DNA from: Eutreptiella sp. 'Long Island Sound 2002'
Lineage: Eukaryota; Protista; Euglenida
DNA length: 64,000 bases
Direction: 5' to 3'
NCBI GenBank assembly: GCA_964036045.1
Contig: OZ038379.1
Span: 15,376,001-15,440,000 of the forward strand
Notes under the pieces: model-generated
What the model was told of the DNA's origin: nothing
Databases searched by the model: none
The model's input: the letters and a program-made list of their open reading frames with translations, nothing else
Made by a program: the position numbers and the translations under genes
In this document: positions 37,780-52,530 of the stretch, one piece after another
Numbering within the stretch: position 1 is the stretch's first letter
Layout of the letters: each line of letters begins with the position of its first letter

Positions 37780-38244
37780 TCAGTCATCGATGTCGGACCC
37801 CGAATCGTCGTCGTCGGACTCATCGTGAATCCGGTACCCGCTCAATCGCATCTGCTCCGCCACCACATCCCCATTTTCTCGCTCCCGGACCTTCACCCGC
37901 ATGAACGGCCGGTCGTGCCCGATGCCCTGCGCCTGCTCCCGCTTGCCGCGCCCCCAGTACTTGTGCGCGACCTGCCCCGGCGCCTCGTCCTCCGCGACCC
38001 GCGCGGTCAGCCACGGGTGCGCCAGGGCCGCGCCGCTGCCGGGCCGCTCGAAGGGCTTGAGGGTGCACAGCGCCGCCACGAAGCTCTTCGCCTCGGCGGA
38101 CAGGCCCTCGCCGCCCCGGAACGACAGCGGCGTGGCCATCTCCCGGCGGAGCTCGCGGAAGTTGGTGGACTGGAACGGGAGGCGGCCGCACAGCAGCGCG
38201 TAGAGCATGACCCCGAGGCTGAAGATGTCCCGTTTGAAGACGAT
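37780..38244 (-). CDS. Kinase gene exon 9 (terminal; subdomains IX-XI and acidic tail)
   Basis: ccctccag|IVFKRDIFSLGVMLYALLCGRLPF...ERPGSGAALAHPW...DESDDDDSGSDIDD*. Confidence 0.92.
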   Translation of the reverse strand: MVFKRDIFSLGVMLYALLCGRLPFQSTNFRELRREMATPLSFRGGEGLSAEAKSFVAALCTLKPFERPGSGAALAHPWLTARVAEDEAPGQVAHKYWGRGKREQAQGIGHDRPFMRVKVRERENGDVVAEQMRLSGYRIHDESDDDDSGSDIDD

Positions 38245-41200
38245 CTGGAGGGCGACGGGCAGGAAAGGCCCCAATCCGGACCCCATCGCCGCGTATGTGC
38301 GTCGCCCCCCCCCCCCCGGAGTGCCCCACGCCGCACATAAGACGCACCATGCCTTAATGGGGGGGGGCGGGGGGCTCTGCTGCGTCGTGTTCGGTGCGAT
38401 GCCCAAACATGATCTCGTCTCGGCACGACAGGCCCACGGTGCCGTGGTTTTTGGCCCGTGCTCGTGCAGAGGGGGGGGGGCGGGGGGTGTAGTTCGATTG
38501 CCTTGTGGTGCCATCGCATTCTGCGACGGGCGGGAAGCACTTCTGCGGTGGGATTGAGGAGGCTTAGTGCACCGCCGTGGTACGATGTGCCCCTCGACGC
38601 CGCGATGATGTCGCCATGCGCCCTCAGCGTTCCATGGGATGCTACGTCATAAAGTGTGCACCCAGCCCCAAAGAGTACAGCACGGCACTGGCAGGGGAGG
38701 CAAAGGACAAGATTCTGGGGGGTCGCCCGCACGTTGCATCCGGAGGGGGCGTGGGAGGACTTCATTTGGGGGGGGGGGGGGGGCGTTCGGGCCCACTTTC
38801 CGGACCCCCTAAACCCCCTTCAAAAAGGCTCCGTGACCGAGGCCCGTCCCGGTACCCCAACGCACATGAGCCACACTGATCCCCCACAACGCGCTGATCA
38901 CTTTTGGGGTGTGCGTCACGGGCTCTGGCTTCTCCCAAACACCCTCCGTCCGTCGATCCCAAGCCATTGGGGTGCCCTCGGTCACGGAAGCCCCTTTCCC
39001 AACCCCCGTCCCCGTGCGGCATCCACATGGTCCCATAGCGATGCCATTGCACTGCAGCCGCCCCTGCCTCCCCACGGCCCCCACTGCCCAGGGCCCATTT
39101 CTTCGACCATCAGCGTGATCCATGCGTTCCATACCCCCCCCCCCCCGCCCCTGCGTCCGGTCTGCTGGCTTTTGGGACTCCACTGCGTCCGGCGTTCATG
39201 CCGGTCAAAGGCCAGCCCTCGTCCGTGAGCGCAGGCTGCTGGCCCCCGGTTGGCCCCACACGGCTGTGGGCCCGCTGCGGGTCTGTGGGGTTCAGAACCC
39301 GCCGGGCATGGGCCGTTCGTCTCGGGGGCTGCGGCATACAACGCCGTGTTGGGCGGGGGGCGAGACCTCATCAAAAAACAGACCAATGCAAACCAGAGGC
39401 AATGCCCTCCACAGTCAGGCATGAGTGCATCTTCATTCTCGATGCCAAACCTGTCGAAACCTCAACACACAAACGGTGTCTGAAACAGAAAACAGAACAT
39501 CATGTCTGCCGACCGTTAGCCAGACAATAACAATCAGCAGCTGTCAGTCAGACATCAGCATTCAGTGTCGGATAAAGAAACCAGGCATTACCCATTGGGC
39601 TGGGTGGGGGACGGGGGGTGGGGCGTAGAAGTTATCTCCCGCCCTCTGGGGGTCGGCGGGAGGTGCGGGGGGGTGCAGGAGTTCCTCAGATGAAGCAACA
39701 CCAAGAAAAGAGCCACAGGCCCCGCCCCGTTGCCGTGCTCCCGTGCTACTTCGGCGGTGCACGGCCCTGAACACGGGTCCGCGACGGATCTCGTGATGGC
39801 CCCCACGGACGCGCCACAATACCTCGTGAGGGATCTTGCGGTAGTGCCCACTCACGGCCAGCACCTCCGGGGCACAGTACCGGAGGGTCCCGCATGGAGT
39901 GCAGAGCACACCGGCCCCGCGCTTCGGGCGTGCACGGTGTCCGCGCGCTTCGGAGGGGCTGTCGTCATCAACGGCCGGGCTCCGGCACTCGCTGTCGCTG
40001 GAGGGGCCGGAGCCCGGGGGCCTCGAATTGGAAGTGGTGAGCGCTGATGTTGATGTTGATGTTGAGCACAGTCCGTTGCGAGAGCCGCCTGCCAACATCC
40101 GCATGATGCACCGGGGACTGGGGGACTGGGGGACTGGGGGGCATTACAAACATTACAAAGGGGGGGGGGGGGGGTTCTGTACGAGAAAATTTCGATGCGG
40201 GTTCAACCCCCCCCCCCCGTGTTTCGGGGGGGGGGGGAATCCACTGATTCGGGCTCAACGTTTCGGGCTGAAGTAAGTTGGCACAAATCAGGATAAGCAC
40301 ACGTTCCCTTTGGTTGCTGTGATGTTTGAGTCATGTGCAATCACAATATTTCCTTCCACTTCCAAAAAAATTTCTTCATCGGTCATTTGGGAGGTCCCAG
40401 GTTCAATCCCAGCTTCCCGTGGCTCGGAACATTTTTCACTTTTGCTGCAGTTTTCAACCTGATGCAACTGTCAAATGCACACACAAAGTGCATGGAAACA
40501 TTGACTCTCAACACTCTTGACACTCGACACACTGCCTTCGTTGGTGCCTTCGTTGGTACCTGGTACTGATGAGGTAGCTGTCTTCTTTGCAAAGAACGGT
40601 GCTGGTTGAAGGTACCGCACACACAATGTACACAACAGAGACCCTGTTGGCTTTTCCGCATGTTGTTCCTGAAACCGGGCCTGTTGAGTTGCGTCAAGGT
40701 CATCCATTGAAGGCAGCATTGACCCCTTGCTGCCACAAACAGAGCACTGTGTCATGAGACTTGTCTGTTAACAGAAATGGAACACAGTTGAACAGAGGTA
40801 TTCATCACCACAACATAAACACCTTCAGCAAATGGTCTTTTTTACCACCACTATCAGAAATCCACTGATTCAGGCCAACGTTTCGGGCTGATTCGGGGAA
40901 ACCGGGTCCCCAAAACCGGGGGGGGGGGGGGGGGTGCAGGTTTATTTCACATGCAGTCCCGAATTTGCTGTGGGAAATTTCGCGCCCACCTGCTGTGAGC
41001 CTACCTTTGGCAAGGCTAGACTCGTTGTACTAAAGTGCACTAAAGTGCTTTTTGGCTTGTTTCAGCTTGTTTTTTTGAATGGGAATTTTGCTGGGCATGT
41101 TGATTTTTCCTAAATGCTACCGCTGCCTTTTTGCTATCTGGTGGTTTGCTGCTAATTGCTGGTGGTGTGTTGTGAATTCCCAAAAGGGTTGCTGTTACTT

Positions 41201-44200
41201 CCGGGTGGCTTGCTGTTGATTGTACAGCGTATGCAGAAAATGGATGACTGTGCAACAAAGGGATGAATCAATGGCGAGAGGCTTCATACCCACAGAATTC
41301 GACTGTGCCCCGTCTGGGCGTATGGCAAAGGCAAGCGTACAACACGCAGTGTTGCTGAACTTCCATGCGAGTGTATTTGGCACAGCGGCCTGAAAAATGT
41401 GTCGGAAATTTCGTACGGATTTGATACGCCAAACATCCCACAGTGAAAAACTCCCGCCGCGAACCCCCGCCACCCCCCGCGCCTCCCCACCGCATGTGCT
41501 CAGCCAATCCAAAAAAAAAAAAAACAGGAAACAGGGCTCTCCCTCGGCGCCTGACCCCTCCGAGAGCGCTATGCCTGCTGAAGCGCAGCCGCCAAGGCAC
41601 ACCATCCGTTAAGTGGTGTGTGGAGGTGGTCCGGGGCTTCCGTGAGAACGTCCCATGCATTGCAGTGGCCGGTGTGTGTCCATGCCTTTGGGGGACCCCC
41701 CCGCCCCCCGCTGCCCTTCGAAAGTGCGATTCGATAGTTTGCGCTGGGGCGGGGTCTGAGGGAGCGGTGGCGAGGGAGGGTGGGCAGATGCTCCTTCACG
41801 CATCAAGTCTGGATAGGAGGTGGACACTCGAAGCGAGACATGTGTGCCTCCGAGGGGGGGCATAACGGCTGAGTCTCGGAGGGTGGGGGGTCGTAAGGGC
41901 AAAACCGCAAAACCGAAACGCACATTCGGCACATCGCAAACAAGCCGCTGCCTGGACAGTGAACAGTGGCAGTCAATGGCTGTGCACCCTCGGCACAGGG
42001 CAAACCAAATAGCATGTGCAGGGGGGGGGGGTCGACAGGCCTGGCGGGCAGACGGACAACGCCCGTTCATGTGCGGCACGGTACGCCATGGCCCCGTGTG
42101 TGTGCCACCGTCGTACCACCAGCGCGTCGGAGGCCCGGCCCGGACCACACCCGACCAGAACAGACCCGATGTCGGGAACAGCGAGGGAGAGGGCCGGCGG
42201 AGGGAGCAAAGGCAACGGAAGGAAACGGGGAAGGGGACGAAGGGGAAGGGGACGAAGGGGAAGGGGAAACGGTTTGGAGAGTGAACGGGTGCAGCGCAGG
42301 GGGGACTCTGGTCAAGGCGGGGGGCTGCGTGGCCGCCCCCCGTACGGTGGCGTGGCATGGCCTGCCGATGGTCGCCGCCCTATGATAGCCCTCGTGGTCC
42401 ACGATGAAGTGTGCCGATGTGACGACCGGTGGGACTGGTACGTCACGCATGCCCCAGCCATACGTCCAATGCAGCCCTCCTCCCGGGGCACATGGAGGAG
42501 CAGGTGCTGGGCGAAGGGGGCATGGGTCTCGGACCACGGAGGAGAGGGGGCAGACCATGCGTTCCGTGGAGGCTCAGGGATGGGGGACGACTGCTGCCCG
42601 TCGCCGGGACGGCCAATGGGGACCATGTGGGGCTGACTGTTCGGAGCAGGTTCAGGTGGCTGTCGCTGCGTAGGGCGGGCACACTGATGGCGGAGGTCCG
42701 CCGCGGTTCTTCGGCGCCCGGGGGAGGGCCTATGTACTTGGACAACCCGAAGTCGATGACGTACACGCGCATGGCTCCTGCGGGCCGGGGGGGGGGGGGG
42801 GGCGTTGCGAGGGCGACACGGGTGAACCGGCGGGAGAACGGGCACAGGACGCTGGGCATTGGCAATGGGGCGTTGTCACACGCGGGCTCATGCACGGATG
42901 GCGGCACAGTAGTCCCAACCCCAGCCCTCAAACCCTCCGCTTGCCTCCGGTGAGGCTAATACTTTTACGTCCTCATCAATTCTCATTTGATGCATTCATT
43001 TCCCCTCTTGCCCAAGATACCGCCAAGTCCCAAATTAATACGGCACGTACACCCCCTGTATCTGAGACCCGGTGCATCTTGTGTGCAACAGCTAAAAGTG
43101 CCACTTCGAGGCACTTGGACGCAAGCCGCTCCAGTGCCATTTGTATTCCATCGCCTTCAACGGATGGAATGAAAGCCGAATTGATGCAGAAGGGTGAACC
43201 AAATTATCATCGAACCGGTGCGACTCACCCAACAACCGAACATGCATACACAAGAAGCATCTTGGCCCGCATTGGGGGGGTTGCCATAGAAGCTGCGTGC
43301 AGGTAGGCACTTCGGCGAGGGTTCATTGGGGGTTGACCACCTGGTCAACTATCGTATGCCCAGCAGCGTCCCGGAGAGAACATGGGGGGCAATCATGTGG
43401 CATTCCCCTGAATATTCAAAACGTGTGCTCTTGCGTTGGTTTTGGTGCGCGGCACAAAGATGCACTGCTTCTCCCGACAAACCAGAGCAGCAAATTATTC
43501 TCAAAGGAGAGCGGAAATCAGGTACGGCGTTTGGTTAAGGGCACCTTGAATCAGAATGCATTCAGATTGCTGGAGGCTGCTGAATGGCTGCCGTTGATTG
43601 CCGAAGAAAGGTGTGCCTGGAGGCTGCTAGATGGTCAATGACATTTCCTCGAGGCAAGCTGTACTTGCAAATTCCCGGAGGCAGTGGCAAGGGCACGGCA
43701 AAGGAGCAAAGTCCATCTCCAATTCAGAGTGCCGCATAAATCCTTAAAAAAGCCAAACAACCCATCGACAAAATGGTTGTGCAGAATTTGTCCAACAGAA
43801 TCTCTCGCTCATGGGACCCCCCCCCCCTGCCTTCGGTATGGCGACCCTGCAAAATCCCTAAATGCCCTGAAACAAAGCCATTCTGGGGCTGCAGTCGGGT
43901 GAAAACACTTTACAAGAAAGTGACCCGGACCCTCCAGGAGGCTGCAAAGGGGTCGCTCGGCTCGGAAGGCGATGCGGCATCCGGCAGAGACACACTGGAC
44001 CAAAATCTGCTGCAGGGCCATACCGTTCTCTTGGCCAATGATGATGTTGTCCAGCTTCAGGTCGCGATGCACCACATGTACCGTGTGGTGCAGGTAATGC
44101 AGGAACTGTAGCACCTGCAGCGCCAGCTGCTGCACCTGCCTCTCCGGCACTTTGCGCTTGCTGAGGAGGTAGTCCACGAGGTCGCACTCCCCGGCGTGCC

Positions 44201-47200
44201 CCATGACCAGAAACACATCCGTGCGAGTCTGAACCACCTGCAATGGGGGGGGGGGGAGGGGGGCTGTCCGAGTGCCTCAGAGTGGCTTGAGAATGTGGCT
44301 GCAGCTTTCATTCGGTTTCATATCGACGCAGTGCGTTATTGGGGGGGCCTGAAAAGCGAAAAGGGGGGGGGGGTCTGCCTCGGGTTGTGTCGGTCTCCAG
44401 ACTGGTGGCCCATTGACCGCCGACGGCCCTTCGCGGTGCATCGATTGCGGTTGGCAGTTCATCCGACGCGCACAAAAGGCCGGGGGTGGGGGTTGCTTAA
44501 GAAAAAGGGGGGAGAACAGGGGAGGGGCGGGGGTGTCTCATCAAGAACGCTCCTGCGGTTCCTGCCGATGTGGTAGTCCACAGTTTTCTAGAGCACCGTG
44601 TGACCGCACAACATGTGACATGATGCTGCATCGTGCCCTTTGGACTCCGTGCCAATGCCCGGCATGGTGCATGCGGTTTGGGCGGAACCAACCGTGACTT
44701 GCGAAAGGGCGGGGGGGGGCTCCCAAGCCTGCGCCACACACCTCATACATCCGCACGGTGTTGCGGTGGTCCAACCGGAAATGGATGTCGATCTCCTGCT
44801 CAAGCACCTGCACTTTCCCGGGGGTCTTCAGCTTCTTCTTGCTGACGGCCTTCACGGCCCGAGGCTGCCCGGTGCGCTTGCACTCGGCGGCGTAGACCAT
44901 CCCGAAGGCCCCTTGCCCCAGGAGGTCCTTCTTGAGGTCCACGGAGTAGTAGTCCTCCAGGCGGTTGATGGCTGAGGACACCGGCACGGGACATGTCGCA
45001 CTCCAGGGGACCGGACCCGCGCCGGTGGGGGCCACAGAGTTCGGTCGACCAATGCGCGACGGGGGGGGGGGGGGCAAGATACTGACGCCCGATTCGCATG
45101 CCCCCCACACCTCCTACCGGGACCCCTATGCGTTGCAGGGACAACGGCCCGTCCAGCACGCAGCACATTGCCTACCAGCCTCTATGGCACAGTACCCCAG
45201 GTTCCAAGCATCCCCCCTGAAGCGTCTGCCACTATGCCACAAGTAGCCCCTCGAAGGTGAGCGCAGCCACTGCCAGACCCATCACAACCCTCATGCCTGG
45301 GTACGTTAAGAGCGTCAAGCGTTGAAATCTCTTGCTCACGAGGTTGCAGGCCGCACGGCTTTCACGGTTGAGAAAGGCAATCATGTACAATGCGAGGTCA
45401 TACTGCAGAGGACACATACGGGGACTTGGGAACAAATGCAGGCAATAAGCACGGCCACAGGCACTTCCACACACACACACGGGGGACTGCAGAGGCTCGC
45501 AGGGGCACAGGTTTAAAGAGCAGTCAGCAGAGGCACACGCAGAACAGGGCGGTCCTTAACGGAAAAAAAAAAGTGTTCCGGAACCAGTTTTCCCAAAAAA
45601 GCCCGCGGGCACTCCATGTGCTCAACCATGGTTGGTGGCGGTTGGCGGTTGGCGGTTGGCGGCGGTTGGCCATTGGCAGTTGGCAACTGGCAGTTGGTGG
45701 TGGTTGGCGGCGGTTGGTGGTTGGTGATTGGTGGTTGGTGGCGGTTGGCAGTGGTTGGCAGTTGGCGGTTGGTCGCCGCTGGTGGTTGGCGGCGGTTGGT
45801 GGCTGACGGTTGGTGGCGGTTGGCGGTTGATGGGAGTTGGCGGTTGGCGGTTGGTGGTCCCTTGGGGCGGTCCTTAAGGGCGGTCCTTGGGGCGGTCCTT
45901 AAGGGCGGTCCTTAGCAAAAAAAAAAAATCTGGTCCCTTAAGGACCGCTCTGACGCAGAATCTCGGGGATACGCGAAAAAGATGTTACCCCACGCACCCG
46001 TGGGAGCATACAGAACACGCACATAACACAAGAATGCACCATGAAGGTACAGGCACAAGGCCGGGACTTGTCACAAGCACAAGCATCAGCAACATCATTG
46101 GACGTACGGGCAGTTCCGACGTACGCTATGCAGTGGACGAGTGGTATGCCAAGATGCTCAGGGGTCCAAAGTGCAATTACAAAATCGACAAGCGTCGCCA
46201 TGCGATGAAAAAAAAATCAAAAAAAGGGCATGTACGGCCCTGAGCATCAAATGCATCCGATGCTGTGCGACGGGACTGGTGCAGGTGCAGGCACAGACCC
46301 AACGGCACCATCGCACAAGCAGGACACACAATGGGACGAGCACATGCAAGTGGGTGACAGGGCAGAACACCTGCAATCGGAATATTTTTGGCACAAAACA
46401 GCGCTTGCAGATGCAGTTCGGATGCCTCCGAGCCCAAGACAATGGCGTCGCAGAGCAATCCTCACAGATGGTGCGACCGCAGCGTCGGCACCAGTGGCGC
46501 CACCGCAGCAGCCCAAAGGAAGCGGAGCACACCAGGCACTTCTCCACCTGCAAAGGACACCAGAGGACAACCGGTACACAAGCAGACACGGAGACACAAA
46601 AGGGAGGCGGGGCTTGCGGGTTTCTCGGAGCACACATGCCAAAAGGGGGAAGCACCAAACACGGAAACAGGGATGGATATAGGGGGTGGTTTTTGCACAG
46701 CGCCAATTATTGCACTGTTTATCCCGGTAATACCTCTACAGTAATACGGTAATACCCACTTTTACGTCACTTTTGTCCAAAAACATGTATTGGAACCAAT
46801 ATATGTGGGCTCCATGTGTGACAGGCATTGGCGTTAGCCGCAGCCGCATTAGCCAACTAGCCGCAGAGGTAAAGAAAATGGGGGAAATGGAAAAAAGGGG
46901 GGAAATGGGGGAAATGGGGGGAAATGGGGGAAAATGGGAGAAAATGGGGGGAAAAGGAGCAAAATGGCCAAAAGTACTCAGTGGGAAACGTAGAAAAAAT
47001 GTGTGAAATTCGTAGGAAATTGGAGGAAAATCGGAGAAAAATGTGATAATTTGGGACAAATTTCCCAGTTTTCCCTGTCCCATTTTCCCCATTTTTCCAC
47101 AGCCTTGCCACCTTTCCCTCAGGTGCCTTTGATGAATTTTGCTAGCCGAACTGGCCGACTGGAAAAATGGAATTTTCTGACTGGCCGATAATGGCCGATT

Positions 47201-50200
47201 TTTCGGCTAGCGCCGAGGCTTGTAAAGAACACATGAAAATACAACACAAGTAAAGGTCACATGTGGAGCATTCGGAAGTGTCCCTTTTGCCGCAAACTTG
47301 GCAGAGATAGGTATCGTCGTCATCCTCATCAACCTTAGGGGCCACTTCCTCTGACCTTCTAGTGAGAGCCCCACCACTGTGGTAGGAAAGCGCACCCCAT
47401 TGGAGCGGGTGTAGAACACCTTGTCTCCAACATTGAGGTGCATGGTGAACGCAATAGAGGGTCTAAGGCTCAATCATGGTCGGTAACAGATACTGGATGC
47501 CCCCGCCCAGGCAGTTCCAGCCAATTTTCCAAGAGTTCCGCACACAATCAAACTGCTATGCTACATCCAGAAAGAAGTAAGATACAGCCTGTCATGTACA
47601 GCATATAACGTGTGGTACCGGGCGAAATGCAAGTACCTGTCAAAAGCAGGCAATGCAGACAGCACCCGGTCTAAGGACATGAGGGGCAACATATGATGTC
47701 CCGCGGCAGACACCCGAGAATGTATCCCCACAAACCCGGCTCAGGGTGCCCGTTTCCAAAGGTACACACAAGCAAGGGAGGGGAAATGATGCTACCATTA
47801 TGCACAATGGCAACGGCACACTGTGACAATGCTGTGTGGGTGCCCATGCCAATCAGACACCCCCAAAACTGGCTACTAGTGGTGGAAAATAGCCGACTAT
47901 TCGCACATCGCGCACACAGCGCATGGTGCGCCCCCATAGTATAGGAGGGGGGTTGCCCCCCACCCCACCCCCCCAAATGATGAAATGACGATGACTAAAT
48001 TAGGCCAGCCAACACATACATCTTCGCGTTCAGCACAGCCCGCGGATCAATTTGATGGGCCTCATGACATTTTTTGAAAGAAACTTTTTTCGGGATTTTT
48101 AGTACTTTTGGCCCTTCAGAAAAAATATTTGGCGGCTTTGGCGGCAAAATTTTCCCTTTACCATGAGACATCAGAGGGACAAGAGTTTCGTACTCGTCAT
48201 TTCGTCGTCTCGGGGCCCTCAAAGCCCCCACCCCCCTGACCCCACGAAAAGAATTCGGTCACTATCCATCCCTGCACAGAAACATGTGTCTGCCCATTCC
48301 CACACCTGGACCCGCAAATCTTGTATGCTTAACCTTGCACGTACCAAGTAGTGTATCTGCAAGGCAATCACCCCATAATTGTCACGGCATCACTGAGACC
48401 AATGTGTGCAGAACGAACGCACCCTCGAGGCTCCCCCTCCTCGGACCTTAGGCTGATGCATCAGGGGCACTTGGCACGAGGGACCACCCTGGAGAATGGG
48501 GAGCGCAGGGACTTGAATAAGGCCCTCTTGGGGGCCTACAACTCCACAGTCTCCAAAGGTTTGGGGCTCTGTTCAAAACCCTCTTCGTTGGGTTTCGGAT
48601 TTCACAAAGTCGGGGGGCGCCTTGGGGGCTGTACCCCGTGTGTGACATTCCGTCGGGTTGCTGTTTCTTTCCTGGGCCCTGGACAGTCACCCGTTCTTCC
48701 CTTCACATGCTGCGTTGGGTCGCCACGTTCTATTGGCCGCTGCAGCCTGTGTTCCTGCTGGTGTCGTTTCCGCATCAGCAGAGCCCGGTAGTTGGCGCAC
48801 CGGGGTTGTGCTGGTTGGTGCAGGGGTCGTTTTACGGTTTTCACTGCCCACTCCCCTCCGCACTCAGGTGGTCCACCCCATGCCTCGCTGCGTTGCCGTG
48901 TACGTGCGGCCCAACACTTCCCTAACGGTCCAACCTGCGCCGCAGGGGTCCCTTTGGTGGCCCAAAGGGCGCTGTATCCCCTGCGCGCGCCACCAACAAA
49001 GGGATTCCACGGCGCTGCAGGGGTCCCTCCGGTGGCCAAAAGGGCGTGGCATCCCCTGCGCGCACCAACCCCTGTGGTGACCGCCGGCTATCGCGGTAGG
49101 CTCCGTGGCCGGATACCTGTGCGGGTTCCACTTGTGGCGTTGAAGTCCGTGACGCATCCTGTTGTGCGAAAAGGCGCCCCCCCAAAGTACCTGCAGCACC
49201 CGTCCGGATGTGCTGCATTTATGTGTTTGTGTGCGTGCAGCCACAAACTCGGAGTGGTCATGTTCTGTGGAACAGAGGTGACCTCCCCCATTGCATCCTC
49301 CTCTGCTCTGTCACAGTGTCACAGTGTCAGACACCAGCCACGAGATGTCTCTCCTGCGTCCGCCCCTCCCTCCCTCCCTCTACGTGCAATCACGCACGCC
49401 TGCACAAGCCGTCTCCCCCCTCCCCCTCCACCTCCCTCGCGGTCACCTGCTTATCCACGCCAACCCTCCGGTTGTTGAACTTCGGGCCATAAAGACACTC
49501 ACCGCACATCTTTGCAGTGTCGACAGAGTGCGGCTTTTCCACGAGGCATTTGTGGCACCGGATGCGGTCGCACTGCGAGCACTTGTACTGGGGGCGGAAG
49601 AAGGAGAAGGGGCTTCCACATCCATCGCAAGAGTCATCGTCCTGGTCATCGGCCCCCAGGGCTGTGGACGCCTCTGGGCTGCTGATCACCTGAAAGCGCA
49701 TGTCGCCATCCACAGCACCTCCTGCAGTACTTCCCAGTCCCAGTTTTGAGGGTCCCGTGCATGAGGCGCTCCGTCCCCCAGTGGCTGAGTGAGTGCGACA
49801 GACCTTCGATCCGTGCGTTTAAGCTGCCATTCAGCAGAGAGAGCGCATGCGTGCACGATTTTGCGTCGCGACCGTGAGAGAGATCCGCTGCAGAACATCT
49901 CTACGGGTACCGCCGCTGCGCAAAACCATGCGCGCACGCGCCCTACCCTGCGGAATCGCAGCACAAGCGCGATTCCCTGGCACCTTCCGCACGAGCAACA
50001 CCGATGAGGCCCCGGGTGTTGTTCATCTGCACGCGACAGTCTGGCACACACCACCACAATTGGAAGGCAACTGCCCCAGCCCCCCCCCCCCCCCCGCCTC
50101 GCCGCCGCCGGACCGCTTTCGCAACCGTTCCGTGATAATACAACTCCATTCTGCAAACCCCCCGCCACAACCCCATGGGCGTGAGGCCGGTGCATACACG

Positions 50201-51428
50201 GATCCGGGTGACCTGCACACCCGCGGAGCAGGTGCAACCGCTGCAGCGGAGAACAGGGAAGCCGGAGTCGCCAGAAAGGCGTCCGTGCCTACCTCTTCCC
50301 GTTGGCCGGTCACACGGCAACCGGCACCAGACATGCGGCACGTGTCTGGAGCAACAATCGGCGCTCATTAGAGATCACCCCCGTGTCATGCACGGCCCAA
50401 CAACGCGGCCGGGGCATGTACAGCACTCCGCAGGACTCACGCACATCGCATGCGTGACCGAGTAGACCTCAGCTCTCCCCATCACCTCTCAGTACCCGGA
50501 CACCAGCGGCAAGTATGCCCATCACGCCCACCAAGTCGGGCAAAGGAAGGCGGAGGCCTAGTGCCCAATCCGGTCCCTCTCCAGGGGTTTTGCTTAACCG
50601 CCGGGGGGGGCGGGGGGATGATGTGAGATACCCACCACTCCTCCACAGTGTTGGAGAACCCAGGGACTCAAAAATATCCCACCCCCACGGGGGCGGGGGG
50701 GGAACCATTCACTGAATCGTGCGAGTTCATCCAGAATTCCACCGCCAAGGGAGGGGGGGGAGGGCTGTTGGACACCCACCCGACCACCCACCCACCCAGG
50801 CATCCCAGCCACTCACCCAAAGGCAAAGAGGGGCAAGAAGTTTCTTCCGGCGCCTTCGGAGGAGACCCACACGCCTCCCAAAATGACCCACCACCACGGA
50901 GGGGGCGGGGGGGGGGGGGGATGGGTTGACACCCACCCACCCCCGGAATTCTGAAATACCCTTCCAGGGGGTCGGCCAAGCCAGACGCACCCAGCCCTCT
51001 CCACGCCCCCCATCGAGATCCCATACCGCATGGCTGCTGGTCATTTTAAATGCGTCCGCTTCATTTTGATGGGGAACGCCGCCCTTCCCTTTCCCCTTTG
51101 CACAGTGGCGGCAAATGCCGGTGGGCTGCGTGCGCTCCAGCTGCAGGACGGGGGAGCTGCAGCAGTCCGGACACAGCGTGCTCCCGCACTTCGGGCACCA
51201 AATACGGCGCACCGGCTCGAACTGCCGGTCACAATGCGCACACTGTGCTGCGGTGCAATCCAGCCCGCGCCTCTCGGCCCGCATTTTTCGATGCCGCCGC
51301 TGCTTCATTCGGGCCACGGCCTCGAACTCCGCAGCAAGGCCCCCAGTAGCAGCTGCGCTGGTGGAACTATCAGCCTCTGAGTCCGGATCCATGGAATCGG
51401 AGGACTCCTGCTCAACATCGGGTGGCAT
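37780..51428 (-). CDS. Triple FYVE-like zinc finger, F-box and CAMK-like Ser/Thr kinase; 9 exons, about 780 aa
   Basis: join(51027..51428, 49447..49689, 46371..46547, 45279..45402, 44742..44971, 44024..44237, 42556..42777, 39823..40088, 37780..38244) = 2343 nt, with all GT-AG introns and consistent phases (0,0,0,1,0,1,1,0). Kinase motifs: GQGAFGMV, AVK, EIDIH, HRDLKLDN, DFG, CGTLRYCAPE, DIFSLG, RP...ALAHPW. Confidence 0.85.
39823..40088 (-). CDS. Kinase gene exon 8 (end of insert and APE)
   Basis: ttggcag|GC GSRNG...LCTPCGTLRYCAPEVLAVSGHYRKIPHE|GTATTG. Confidence 0.85.
42556..42777 (-). CDS. Kinase gene exon 7 (DFG and start of the long insert)
   Basis: cccgcag|GA AMRVYVIDFGLSKY...; phase-1 donor CAT G|GTCTGC inferred from the phase of the next exon. 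Confidence 0.8.
44024..44237 (-). CDS. Kinase gene exon 6 (subdomains V-VIb)
   Basis: cattgcag|VVQTRTDVFLVM...VVHRDLKLDNIIIGQEN G|GTATGG. Confidence 0.92.
44742..44971 (-). CDS. Kinase gene exon 5 (subdomains I-IV)
   Basis: tcctcag|CC INRLEDYY...LLGQGAFGMVYAAECKRTGQPRAVK...EQEIDIHFRLDHRNTVRMYE|GTGTGT. Confidence 0.92.
45279..45402 (-). CDS. Kinase gene exon 4 (F-box-like motif)
   Basis: cctctgcag|YDLALYMIAFLNRESRAACNLVSKRFQRLT fits the F-box pattern. The phase-1 donor is ambiguous: GT at 45278 or GC at 45296. Confidence 0.7.
45628..45856. repeat. Degenerate (GGCGGTT)n / (GGTGGTT)n G-rich array, followed by GGGCGGTCCTT repeats
   Basis: About 30 heptamer-like units. GGGCGGTCCTT occurs at 45547 and four times at 45863-45913. 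Lies in the kinase intron between the FYVE3 and F-box exons. Confidence 0.9.
46371..46547 (-). CDS. Kinase gene exon 3 (FYVE finger 3)
   Basis: cctttgcag|VEKCLVCSASFGLLRWRHWCRRCGRTICEDCS...CICKRCFVPKIFRLQ|GTGTTC. Confidence 0.88.
46690..47940. mobile_element. Degenerate copy of the Harbinger-like transposon family (composite), in kinase intron 2
   Basis: Blocks at 46695-46815, 47225-47330 and 47780-47935 are direct repeats of 51870-52030, 52046-52190 and 52380-52530. The minus strand at 47220-47345 reads DEDDDDTYLCQVCGKRDTSECSTCDLYLC, like the tail at 25540-25700. Confidence 0.65.
48630..48860. mobile_element. Dispersed SINE-like repeat family, copy 3
   Basis: Core GGACAGTCACCCGTTCT at 48681-48697 plus matching flanking blocks. 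Confidence 0.75.
49447..49689 (-). CDS. Kinase gene exon 2 (FYVE-like finger 2)
   Basis: tttcag|VISSP...CDGCGSPFSFFRPQYKCSQCDRIRCHKC...MCGEC...VDKQ|GTGACC. Confidence 0.85.
51027..51428 (-). CDS. Kinase gene exon 1 (FYVE-like finger 1)
   Basis: MPPDVEQE...CAHCDRQFEPVRRIWCPKCGSTLCPDCC...ICRHC; donor GCG|GTATGG; AG acceptor-like site (tgtcttag) 11 nt upstream of the ATG. Confidence 0.8.
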
Positions 51429-51859: not shown

Positions 51860-52530
51860 GGGCACAGTGCGCGCACAGCGCCAATTATTGCACTGTTTAT
51901 CCCGGTAATACCTCTGAAAACCACCCACCTACAGAAGCATGCATGCTCAATTCCAAAACTGTGCAATTGAAACGTCTCGTGTTCTCAACGTCACATTTGT
52001 CCAAAAAACATATATTGGAACCAATATATTTGGGTTGCATGTGTTAAAGAACACATGAAAATATATGAAGGGCTACTTCAATCTCACAAGGATGTTCACG
52101 CATGCAACCTCAACACAAGTAAAGGTCACATGTGGAGCATTCGGAGGTGTCCCTTTTGCCGGAAACTTGGCAGAGATCGGTATCATCATCCACCTTTGGT
52201 TTGGGAGAGTGGTTCGCGACATTTGGCCGGGGTCACATCAAGAGTTGCATGCCAACACATGTATCCTTCTCCATTTTTCACAATTTATGTTGCGGAGACA
52301 AAAATGGTATCAGCCCTATAGCCCATGGGAACACATTCCTTCTTCCATTTGGGCACAGGAAGTGGCCCCTGTAGTGGGGGAGGGAAAATGATGCTACAAT
52401 TATGTACAATGGCAACAGCACACACTATGACAATGCTGTGTGGGTGCCCATGCCAATCATACACCCAAAAAACTGGCTACCGGTTGGTGGAAAATAACCG
52501 ACTTTTCGCACAGCGCACGGTGCGCCCCCT
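51860..52530. mobile_element. Degenerate Harbinger-like family copy (rearranged)
   Basis: Plus strand 52195-52350 VVRDIWPGSHQELH...ILLHFSQFMLRRQKWYQPYSPWEHIPSSIW is homologous to IVRNTWRGSSTQLH...ALLHLQQFLIRRQVRYPPYGPWEH at about 25730-25870. The minus strand at 52110-52195 encodes the Cys-rich tail. Confidence 0.7.

Follow-up and report, generated by a model that had tools for sequence, protein, structure and literature searches.

The window analysed here, 64,000 nucleotides of a contig of Eutreptiella sp. (C2:15376001-15440000 of a 2.28-Gb eukaryotic assembly, to which the contig labels C2, C3 and so on to C25 refer throughout), carries nine collinear coding blocks on its minus strand from 51428 to 37780, corresponding to C2:15413780-15427428 of the assembly and lying in stop-to-stop frames between 51482 and 37783. 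These blocks encode, in this order, three 8-Cys FYVE-type fingers, an F-box-like segment of ~40 residues and a protein kinase domain of the CAMK group. We consider it probable that they make up one intact, intron-rich euglenid gene, a member of a Euglenozoa-wide family built as (FYVE)n, F-box and CAMK-type Ser/Thr kinase, with n being three in this copy and with a putative coupling to membranes and to Skp1. A first-pass annotation of the bare sequence had proposed the three fingers, the F-box-like segment and the CAMK-like kinase, and all of them were recovered at their proposed positions on the minus strand.

Whole-protein analyses were run on stand-ins, namely two intronless paralogs (L011 and L012) and the mRNA products P0152 and P0003, and the window gene itself was searched exon by exon. 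The intronless paralogs, both on C6, are single open reading frames (ORFs) of 778 and 773 aa that read FYVE x3, linker and kinase. All nine window blocks align in order with the 778-aa ORF as well as with P0006/P0152, the best match to the window, to which every block is 37-75% identical, a collinearity well above what chance would give. The source contig of P0152 (3,020 nt) starts with ATTTTTTTTCG and ends in poly(A), and that of P0003 also starts with TTTTTTTTCG, the 3'-terminal stretch of the euglenid spliced leader. The spliced-leader remnant at their start marks both contigs as mature mRNAs made by trans-splicing, each with the whole architecture. The same layout recurs in transcriptome proteins of Euglena gracilis and E. 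longa. In the window, the F-box spans the exon 3/4 junction, and therefore the FYVE exons and the kinase-side exons cannot be separate genes. Together, these alignments place the FYVE fingers, the F-box-like segment and the kinase in one predicted polypeptide, whose fusion is not an artefact of mis-joining. The objection raised in the first-pass annotation, that finger and kinase exons might belong to separate transcripts, thus fails, since intronless paralogs and full-length euglenid mRNAs hold the same domain order in one ORF.

T8CG, in which the euglenid spliced leader ends, opens two contigs (L045:1-11 and L032:1-10) from Joint Genome Institute (JGI) samples 3300052695 and 3300050388. These samples thus hold euglenid mRNAs of full length that can help to annotate this genome.

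The extent of the family was revealed by a HMMER scan with a profile of finger 3 plus linker against 1.84 billion representatives, which yielded ~28 clusters matching finger and linker together; a word-index protein search with the FYVE/linker of an intronless paralog returned three proteins only. Pfam recognised FYVE in all 29 cluster representatives, Pkinase in 25, F-box-like in 12 and F-box in seven. All full-span members with a source name are euglenozoan, and comprise euglenids (E. gracilis, E. longa, Chasmostoma nieuportense and Anisonema acinus), diplonemids (Namystynia karyoxenos, Artemidia motanka and Diplonema papillatum, whose protein KAJ9458769.1 shows FYVE and F-box-like only) and the prokinetoplastid Papus ankaliazontas. 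The nearest relatives of the window gene come from the four euglenids. No trypanosomatid was found among the named matches; many matches are unnamed metagenome or assembly proteins. The genome under study holds at least eight family loci, located on C2 (the window), C19, C5, C17, C22, C8 and C3, with two on C6, and E. gracilis EG_transcript_2671 is 51% identical to the best of them.

Each of the three fingers contains four CxxC pairs. When each exon was scanned alone with the Pfam FYVE model (PF01363; gathering cut-off 27.8 bits), fingers 1 and 2, with 8 Cys each, scored 26.5 and 26.8 bits, that is, under the cut-off, and finger 3, with 8+1 Cys, scored 35.1 bits, over it. Relatives scanned whole reached 52-66 bits in 2-3 matched stretches. 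The best PDB matches of finger 3 were the FYVE domains of EEA1 (E 1.7e-7) and Vps27 (E 3.8e-7). The signature for binding of phosphatidylinositol 3-phosphate (PI3P), that is, WxxD, R(R/K)HHCR and RVC, is not found in any window finger. Fingers 1 and 2 are devoid of the basic motif altogether, and finger 3 reads GVD (no WxxD Trp), RWRHWCR for R(R/K)HHCR (second His lost) and NCIC for RVC. PI3P binding by the window protein is doubtful because of these losses, which speak against lipid-directed targeting of this copy, as does the report that Phytophthora PsZFPK1 localises without need of its FYVE domain (PMC10381902). The membrane or lipid targeting originally ascribed to the fingers is thus uncertain here, with the signature absent from two of them and degenerate in the third. 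The finger adjacent to the F-box carries GVD, RRHWCR and NCIC in all euglenid members, with the further change to RWRHWCR in the window copy, and the single FYVE domain beside the F-box is canonical for the three motifs in diplonemid, prokinetoplastid and several unnamed members. Finger number follows the same divide, being 3-4 in euglenid members and one in the others. These residues make PI3P binding likely for the ancestral form.

It is possible, although it is not the explanation we favour, that the euglenid fingers are FYVE-derived zinc modules for protein or other contacts that bind no lipid, membrane association being provided by N-terminal acylation. The disappearance of the signature from fingers 1-2 and its alteration in finger 3 throughout the euglenid members, with retention in one-finger relatives, would fit this explanation, and so would the MGxxxS/T start (a myristoylation-type N-terminus) of the C6 paralogs (L011:736- and L012:751-), P0002 and P0003. 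Moreover, myristoylation and FYVE domains interchange on euglenozoan Rheb (PMC5869587). However, R, H and R survive from the basic motif in finger 3, together with the WxxD Asp and a basic RRHP patch, and the window protein has no MG start. The members that begin with MGxxxS/T (L011, L012, P0002 and P0003) also share a duplicated LMLFGATMP motif, and the window protein has neither feature.

The F-box-like segment is formed by joining FRLQ at the end of exon 3 to YDLAL...FQRL in exon 4, and the aligned family linkers follow the pattern (L-P/S)-x-x-[LV]-x-Q-Y-x-x-x-F-L-...-L-R-V-C-K-R-F-Q-x-L. The window segment scored 13.7-15.4 bits in Pfam (E 0.016 at 15.4), and other members 21.2 (C19), 19.3/19.0 (C8), 14.1 (P0002), 15.9 (P0003) and 23.4 bits (P0061); the gathering cut-offs are 20.5 bits for F-box (PF00646) and 24.3 bits for F-box-like (PF12937). 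Sub-threshold matches fell at the same place in five of seven members, with no competing family matched there, and across the family the F-box match always came directly after the FYVE domain. Profile comparison with hhalign of 33 family linkers and 12 Pfam-passing F-boxes of the same genome gave a probability of 94.7% (E 6e-8, score 35.5), as compared with 0.6% for the reversed control and at most 4.4% for 20 column shuffles; a smaller profile of 6 sequences gave 74.8%. In a PDB search with this 6-sequence profile, FBXW8, FBXW7 and FBXW11 made up the top six, that is, six of the seven matches listed (E 0.1-1.7), and the alignments fell on their F-boxes. AlphaFold placed helices at ELAQYMME, DGRLNANRVC and RFNR, which are the F-box positions, with a predicted local distance difference test (pLDDT) score of ~80 within the whole chain and 78 for a 60-residue fragment. 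Foldseek returned 44 matches to this fragment, and among the matches listed all were F-box domains, nearly all from Skp1 complexes, headed by Skp2 (1fs2_A; probability 0.92, root-mean-square deviation 1.1 A over 31 columns, 35% identity). The sole match of a FYVE plus F-box fragment in the ESM Atlas was a viral FYVE cluster, whose 0.84 lies below the meaningful level of the tool. Skp1 genes are present in the genome, one of them at C9:27353852. On these profile and model comparisons, the stretch of ~40 residues that lies between finger 3 and the kinase is a predicted divergent F-box that would bind Skp1.

Several observations argue the other way. Both Pfam F-box models stay under their gathering thresholds in every member tested; in the window, Gln stands for the Pro of the LP motif, and Phe has taken the place of the conserved Trp across the family (Phe or Leu throughout). 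The individual E-values of Foldseek (0.5-8, the domain being short) and of the PDB sequence search (0.1-1.7) are weak, and linker helices that are free or packed on the kinase are both compatible with the analyses. The HMM and structural check proposed for the F-box in the first-pass annotation therefore gave a divided answer, as the window segment fell below the Pfam threshold (15.4 bits) but the family profile matched real F-boxes in hhalign, and the fold matches listed for the modelled fragment are all F-boxes, at weak E-values. We regard it as rather unlikely that the helices are a structural linker, an extension packed on the kinase N-lobe or an F-box relic with no relation to Skp1 or to Skp1-Cul1-F-box (SCF) ligases, in which case the protein would be a membrane-tethered CAMK-type kinase only. 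The sub-threshold Pfam scores, the substituted Pro and Trp and the short third helix of the model would agree with such a linker, and the whole-chain predicted template modelling (pTM) score of 0.64 leaves room for a fixed linker-kinase arrangement. Conversely, the family profile matches real F-boxes strongly as judged by the controls, the fold matches listed are solely F-boxes, many non-euglenid members retain L-P, with scores of up to 23.4 bits outside the euglenids, and a related Leishmania FYVE plus F-box protein associates with Skp1 (PMC11285970).

As for the kinase, GQGAFG, AVK (44861-44844), EQEI, HRDLKLDN, DFG and CAPE within the TPCGTLRYCAPE region are intact, and the blocks match Pfam Pkinase piecewise over its positions 4-67 (exon 5), 65-135, 154-174 and 176-263 (exon 9). 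PDB searches identified Rad53, TSSK6, MARK, Snf1, CDPK1, CaMKI/IV and DAPK as the closest solved relatives; a second PDB profile search, whose alignment consisted mostly of whole proteins and so matched kinases, was used for the kinase class and not for the F-box. By its nearest solved structures, the kinase belongs to the CAMK group, and it looks active. The proposal of an apparently active CAMK-like kinase is thus borne out by the intactness of every catalytic motif and by best PDB relatives of this group. There is no EF-hand or calmodulin-type regulatory tail, and no Pfam match was obtained after the kinase domain. A long Ser/Pro-rich insert separates DFG from the P+1 loop, and AlphaFold models its equivalent in P0152 (residues 447-542) as disordered. 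After the kinase domain, the window protein carries the motif RPFMRVKV...VVAEQMRLSGY (37911-37834) followed by an acidic tail. This motif, in the form RPFMxxKV...NGxVVAE...LSGY, is common to the C22 and C8 paralogs and P0152, has no Pfam match and is predicted by AlphaFold, at low confidence, to fold as a beta-hairpin.

The exon model is given in Table 1. The gene probably starts at an ATG (51428-51426) that is the first of its frame, with an in-frame stop upstream and pyrimidine-rich AG acceptors preceding it, and ends with the TGA at 37782-37780. Homology searches of the window found no upstream exons akin to the N-terminal 225 residues of P0152 or to the N-termini of members with an MG start. 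At every well-supported junction, the length of the encoded peptide equals that of the relatives.

Table 1. Coding exons and splice junctions of the FYVE, F-box and kinase gene (window positions; a slash marks a splice boundary)
Feature	Position	Strand	Content or splice type	Boundaries, support and similarity
Exon 1	51027..51428	-	acidic/Ser-rich N-terminus, FYVE-like finger 1 (Cys span 51242-51102)	3' end 51027 (donor GTATGG) tentative; conserved with paralogs C19, C17, C22 and with P0152
Exon 2	49447..49689	-	FYVE-like finger 2 (49629-49495), RRVGVDKQ	5' end 49689 tentative; donor after 49447 (GTGACC) well supported; 68% identity to paralog C17, 67% to P0006
Exon 3	46371..46547	-	FYVE finger 3 (46538-46398; RWRHWCRRCG, NCIC), F-box start FRLQ (46382-46371)	acceptor TGTCCTTTGCAG, donor CAG/GTGTTC
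Exon 4	45297..45402	-	F-box-like core YDLALYMIAFLNRESRAACNLVSKRFQRL (45402-45316) and TLLTYP	end 45297 with GC donor CAG/GCATGA; alternative GT donor after 45279
Exon 5	44742..44971	-	kinase N-lobe: INRLEDYY, GQGAFG (44918-44901), RAVKAV (44861-44844), alphaC Glu in EQEIDI	69% identity to P0152
Exon 6	44024..44237	-	hinge to catalytic loop HRDLKLDN (44069-44046); Pfam Pkinase positions 65-135	donor ACG/GTATGG
Exon 7	42450..42777	-	DFG (42754-42746), first part of long low-complexity activation-segment insert	start 42777 or 42774; 42450 at 3' side is open-frame limit only
Exon 8	39823..40140	-	insert end and TPCGTLRYCAPE (39900-39865)	40140 at 5' side is open-frame limit only; donor after 39823 (GTATTG) well supported
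Exon 9	37780..38244	-	kinase C-lobe (KRDIFSLG ... ERP ... HPWL), tail motif, acidic tail DESDDDDSGSDIDD (37824-37783), stop TGA	59% identity to P0152 over 138 residues including tail motif
Junction 1/2	51027/49689		GT-AG	plausible, not unique
Junction 2/3	49447/46547		GT-AG	well supported; peptide RRVGVDKQ/VEKC agrees with relatives
Junction 3/4	46371/45402		GT-AG, phase 0	well supported; FRLQ/YDLAL, CAG/GT donor, CAG acceptor
Junction 5/6	44742/44237		GT-AG, phase 0	well supported; RMYE/VVQTRT
Junction 6/7	44024/42777 or 42774		GT-AG	well supported, ambiguous start
Junction 7/8			in activation-loop insert	boundary known by open-frame limits only
Junction 8/9	39823/38244		GT-AG	well supported; HYRKIPHE/IVFKRDIF, same length as in intronless paralog

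Two joins had been singled out beforehand as critical. The first, 46371-45402, proved to be a clean GT-AG join in phase 0, but the second, 45279-44971, is legal GT-AG that inserts MRVVM. The GC-AG join 45297-44971 yields ...TLLTYPA-INRLEDYY, with the spacing of FNAINRVDDYY in P0152 and every other member, and similarity to the C19 paralog fades directly after YPG. The exon-4 donor is therefore probably the GC at 45297 rather than the GT at 45279, because its spacing equals that of all relatives and the C19 similarity ends at that point. The model as a whole derives from genomic sequence and homology, and the exon 1/2 and exon 7/8 borders and the exon-4 donor are ambiguous, which tempers confidence in its finer detail.

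The coding exons have been under purifying selection, with a ratio of nonsynonymous to synonymous substitution rates (dN/dS) of 0.26 against C19 and 0.14 against C17, dS being near or past saturation. It is highly improbable that the copy in the window does not work as one gene, being either a decaying paralog or neighbouring FYVE and kinase units fused only in the paralogs: the locus is known from genomic sequence, its close paralogs are degenerate (HQN for HRD, a broken G-loop and a stop on C19; a fragment with a stop on C5), its introns are long and repeat-rich and its N-terminus is unlike that of other members, but the nine blocks are all open, ordered and on one strand, the junction peptides agree in length with the relatives, catalytic and zinc-binding residues are all intact, dN/dS stays at 0.14 to 0.26 and an F-box split over the exon 3/4 junction leaves no independent units.

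The closest paralog lies at C19:10406000-10433999 (L025-L027) and is 81% identical in finger 3. It has HQNLRLDN in place of the HRD motif, its G-loop is degenerate (GPSREGACG) and its kinase domain is shortly followed by a stop; it is probably a pseudokinase or a pseudogene. In the C5:14664142 region (L028:8143-8586), a lone copy of the F-box exon with its downstream intron shows 86% protein identity and an in-frame stop; no other exons were detected nearby, and the copy looks like a fragment of a segmental duplication. Elsewhere in the assembly, C25:24914236-25136989 holds at least nine intronless kinase genes in tandem, nearly identical to one another, with ORFs of 659-660 aa and a spacing of 17-54 kb. 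At least 15 FYVE-like exon copies in ORFs of 392-492 aa occur at C12:32468743-34063262 and on several small contigs, mostly over about 1.6 Mb and all with the same 46% match to finger 3; judging from this pattern, they are an amplified gene family or repeat. In and around the window gene, a dispersed repeat with 86-88% identity is present in the same orientation at 47229-47889 (intron 2) and 52098-52493 (upstream of the gene), a second repeated element at 51966-51816 is also found in an intron of the C22 paralog, and a G/T-rich minisatellite with units of 7 to 41 nt occupies 45630-45858 in intron 3, the C3 and C8 paralogs having similar arrays in their introns.

The head of the protein has a published counterpart in TbFRP (Tb927.7.3790), a FYVE, F-box and Ras-like GTPase protein of Trypanosoma brucei and other Euglenozoa, whose FYVE domain confers wortmannin-sensitive, PI3P-dependent membrane/endosomal localisation and whose adjacent F-box was tied by its authors to rapid turnover (PMC3593210). 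Compared by the published layout, both proteins have an N-terminal FYVE, an F-box right after it and a signalling enzyme next, both are restricted to Euglenozoa, including E. gracilis, as far as members with a source name go, and both would share a logic of endosomal PI3P targeting and SCF-linked turnover. Unlike TbFRP, the protein described here carries a kinase instead of a GTPase, and three FYVE fingers as opposed to one (with an insertion). The Pfam families counted in 29 full-span members included no Ras family, and among the remaining 122 of the 150 best HMMER matches a screen for a P-loop plus NKxD flagged only P0122 (1096 aa). In its predicted layout, the gene is thus an FRP-type head with a kinase in the place of the GTPase and with fingers multiplied and derived in euglenids.

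FYVE kinases are also known from protists, among them T. brucei ZFK and relatives, which are eukaryotic protein kinases of the AGC group with one FYVE (PMC1266030), P. sojae PsZFPK1-5 (PMC10381902) and P. infestans PITG_01365 (PMC3019232), and the combination of FYVE and kinase was reported as exclusive to protists (PMC10381902). These kinases share with our protein a FYVE finger N-terminal to a Ser/Thr kinase, but they are AGC-group kinases with a single FYVE, whereas the kinase here is CAMK-group; PMC10381902 cites a PX domain for ZFK as well. No F-box is reported for those kinases, and PMC10381902 makes no mention of the term 'F-box'. Flp3 (LINF_140018100) of Leishmania infantum, which is F-box-like and of the FYVE type, was recovered with Skp1 by co-immunoprecipitation (PMC11285970). 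Compared by annotation, this kinetoplastid protein combines a FYVE-type domain with an F-box-like motif and is a euglenozoan precedent for FYVE-adjacent F-boxes, but no kinase domain is reported for it (PMC11285970). The predicted three-helix segment superposes on the F-boxes of Skp2, FBXW7 and beta-TrCP, and VCKRF.RL matches VCKRWYRL of Skp2. In contrast to these proteins, the box is followed by a kinase and not by leucine-rich repeats, WD40 or other substrate-binding domains, Phe replaces its conserved Trp and the window copy has lost the Pro of LP. A full-text literature search found no published description of a FYVE, F-box and kinase protein. The architecture was at first presented as a combination not known from model organisms, and the complete combination does appear undescribed, but TbFRP, Flp3 and the protist FYVE kinases are partial precedents (PMC3593210, PMC11285970, PMC10381902, PMC1266030).

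Gene regulation in Euglenozoa is largely post-transcriptional, and their signalling pathways are poorly mapped. To our knowledge, few kinases carry an F-box of their own. In the mechanism that we propose, the zinc fingers would hold the enzyme on an endomembrane, presumably via PI3P in the one-finger relatives, and the extra derived fingers of euglenids may act by avidity or protein contacts. The F-box would dock Skp1, and the kinase would thereby be coupled to an SCF-type ligase at the membrane. The protein could then be a receptor that phosphorylates the substrates it presents, or a kinase whose own amount is controlled by SCF-dependent turnover, as has been suggested for TbFRP. Both the disordered activation-segment insert and the conserved C-terminal motif are likely regulatory. 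A far more speculative extension, to which we give little credence, is that Euglenozoa own a portable FYVE and F-box cassette that links signalling enzymes (the GTPase of FRP and the kinase here) to endosomal PI3P and SCF, the kinase version writing a phosphodegron and presenting the substrate to Skp1-Cul1 so that kinase and E3 receptor would be united in one polypeptide, and the fingers having been multiplied and re-purposed in euglenids.

The gene provides a second, independent instance of the FYVE and F-box head known from TbFRP, and its family shows a euglenid expansion and alteration of FYVE fingers. It also carries a lesson for annotation, as a multi-exon family of this kind is missed by ORF-based gene calls. 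The function of the head becomes testable in the free-living, tractable E. gracilis and D. papillatum. Should the F-box bind Skp1, the family would couple, within a single protein, membrane identity with phosphorylation and ubiquitin ligation.

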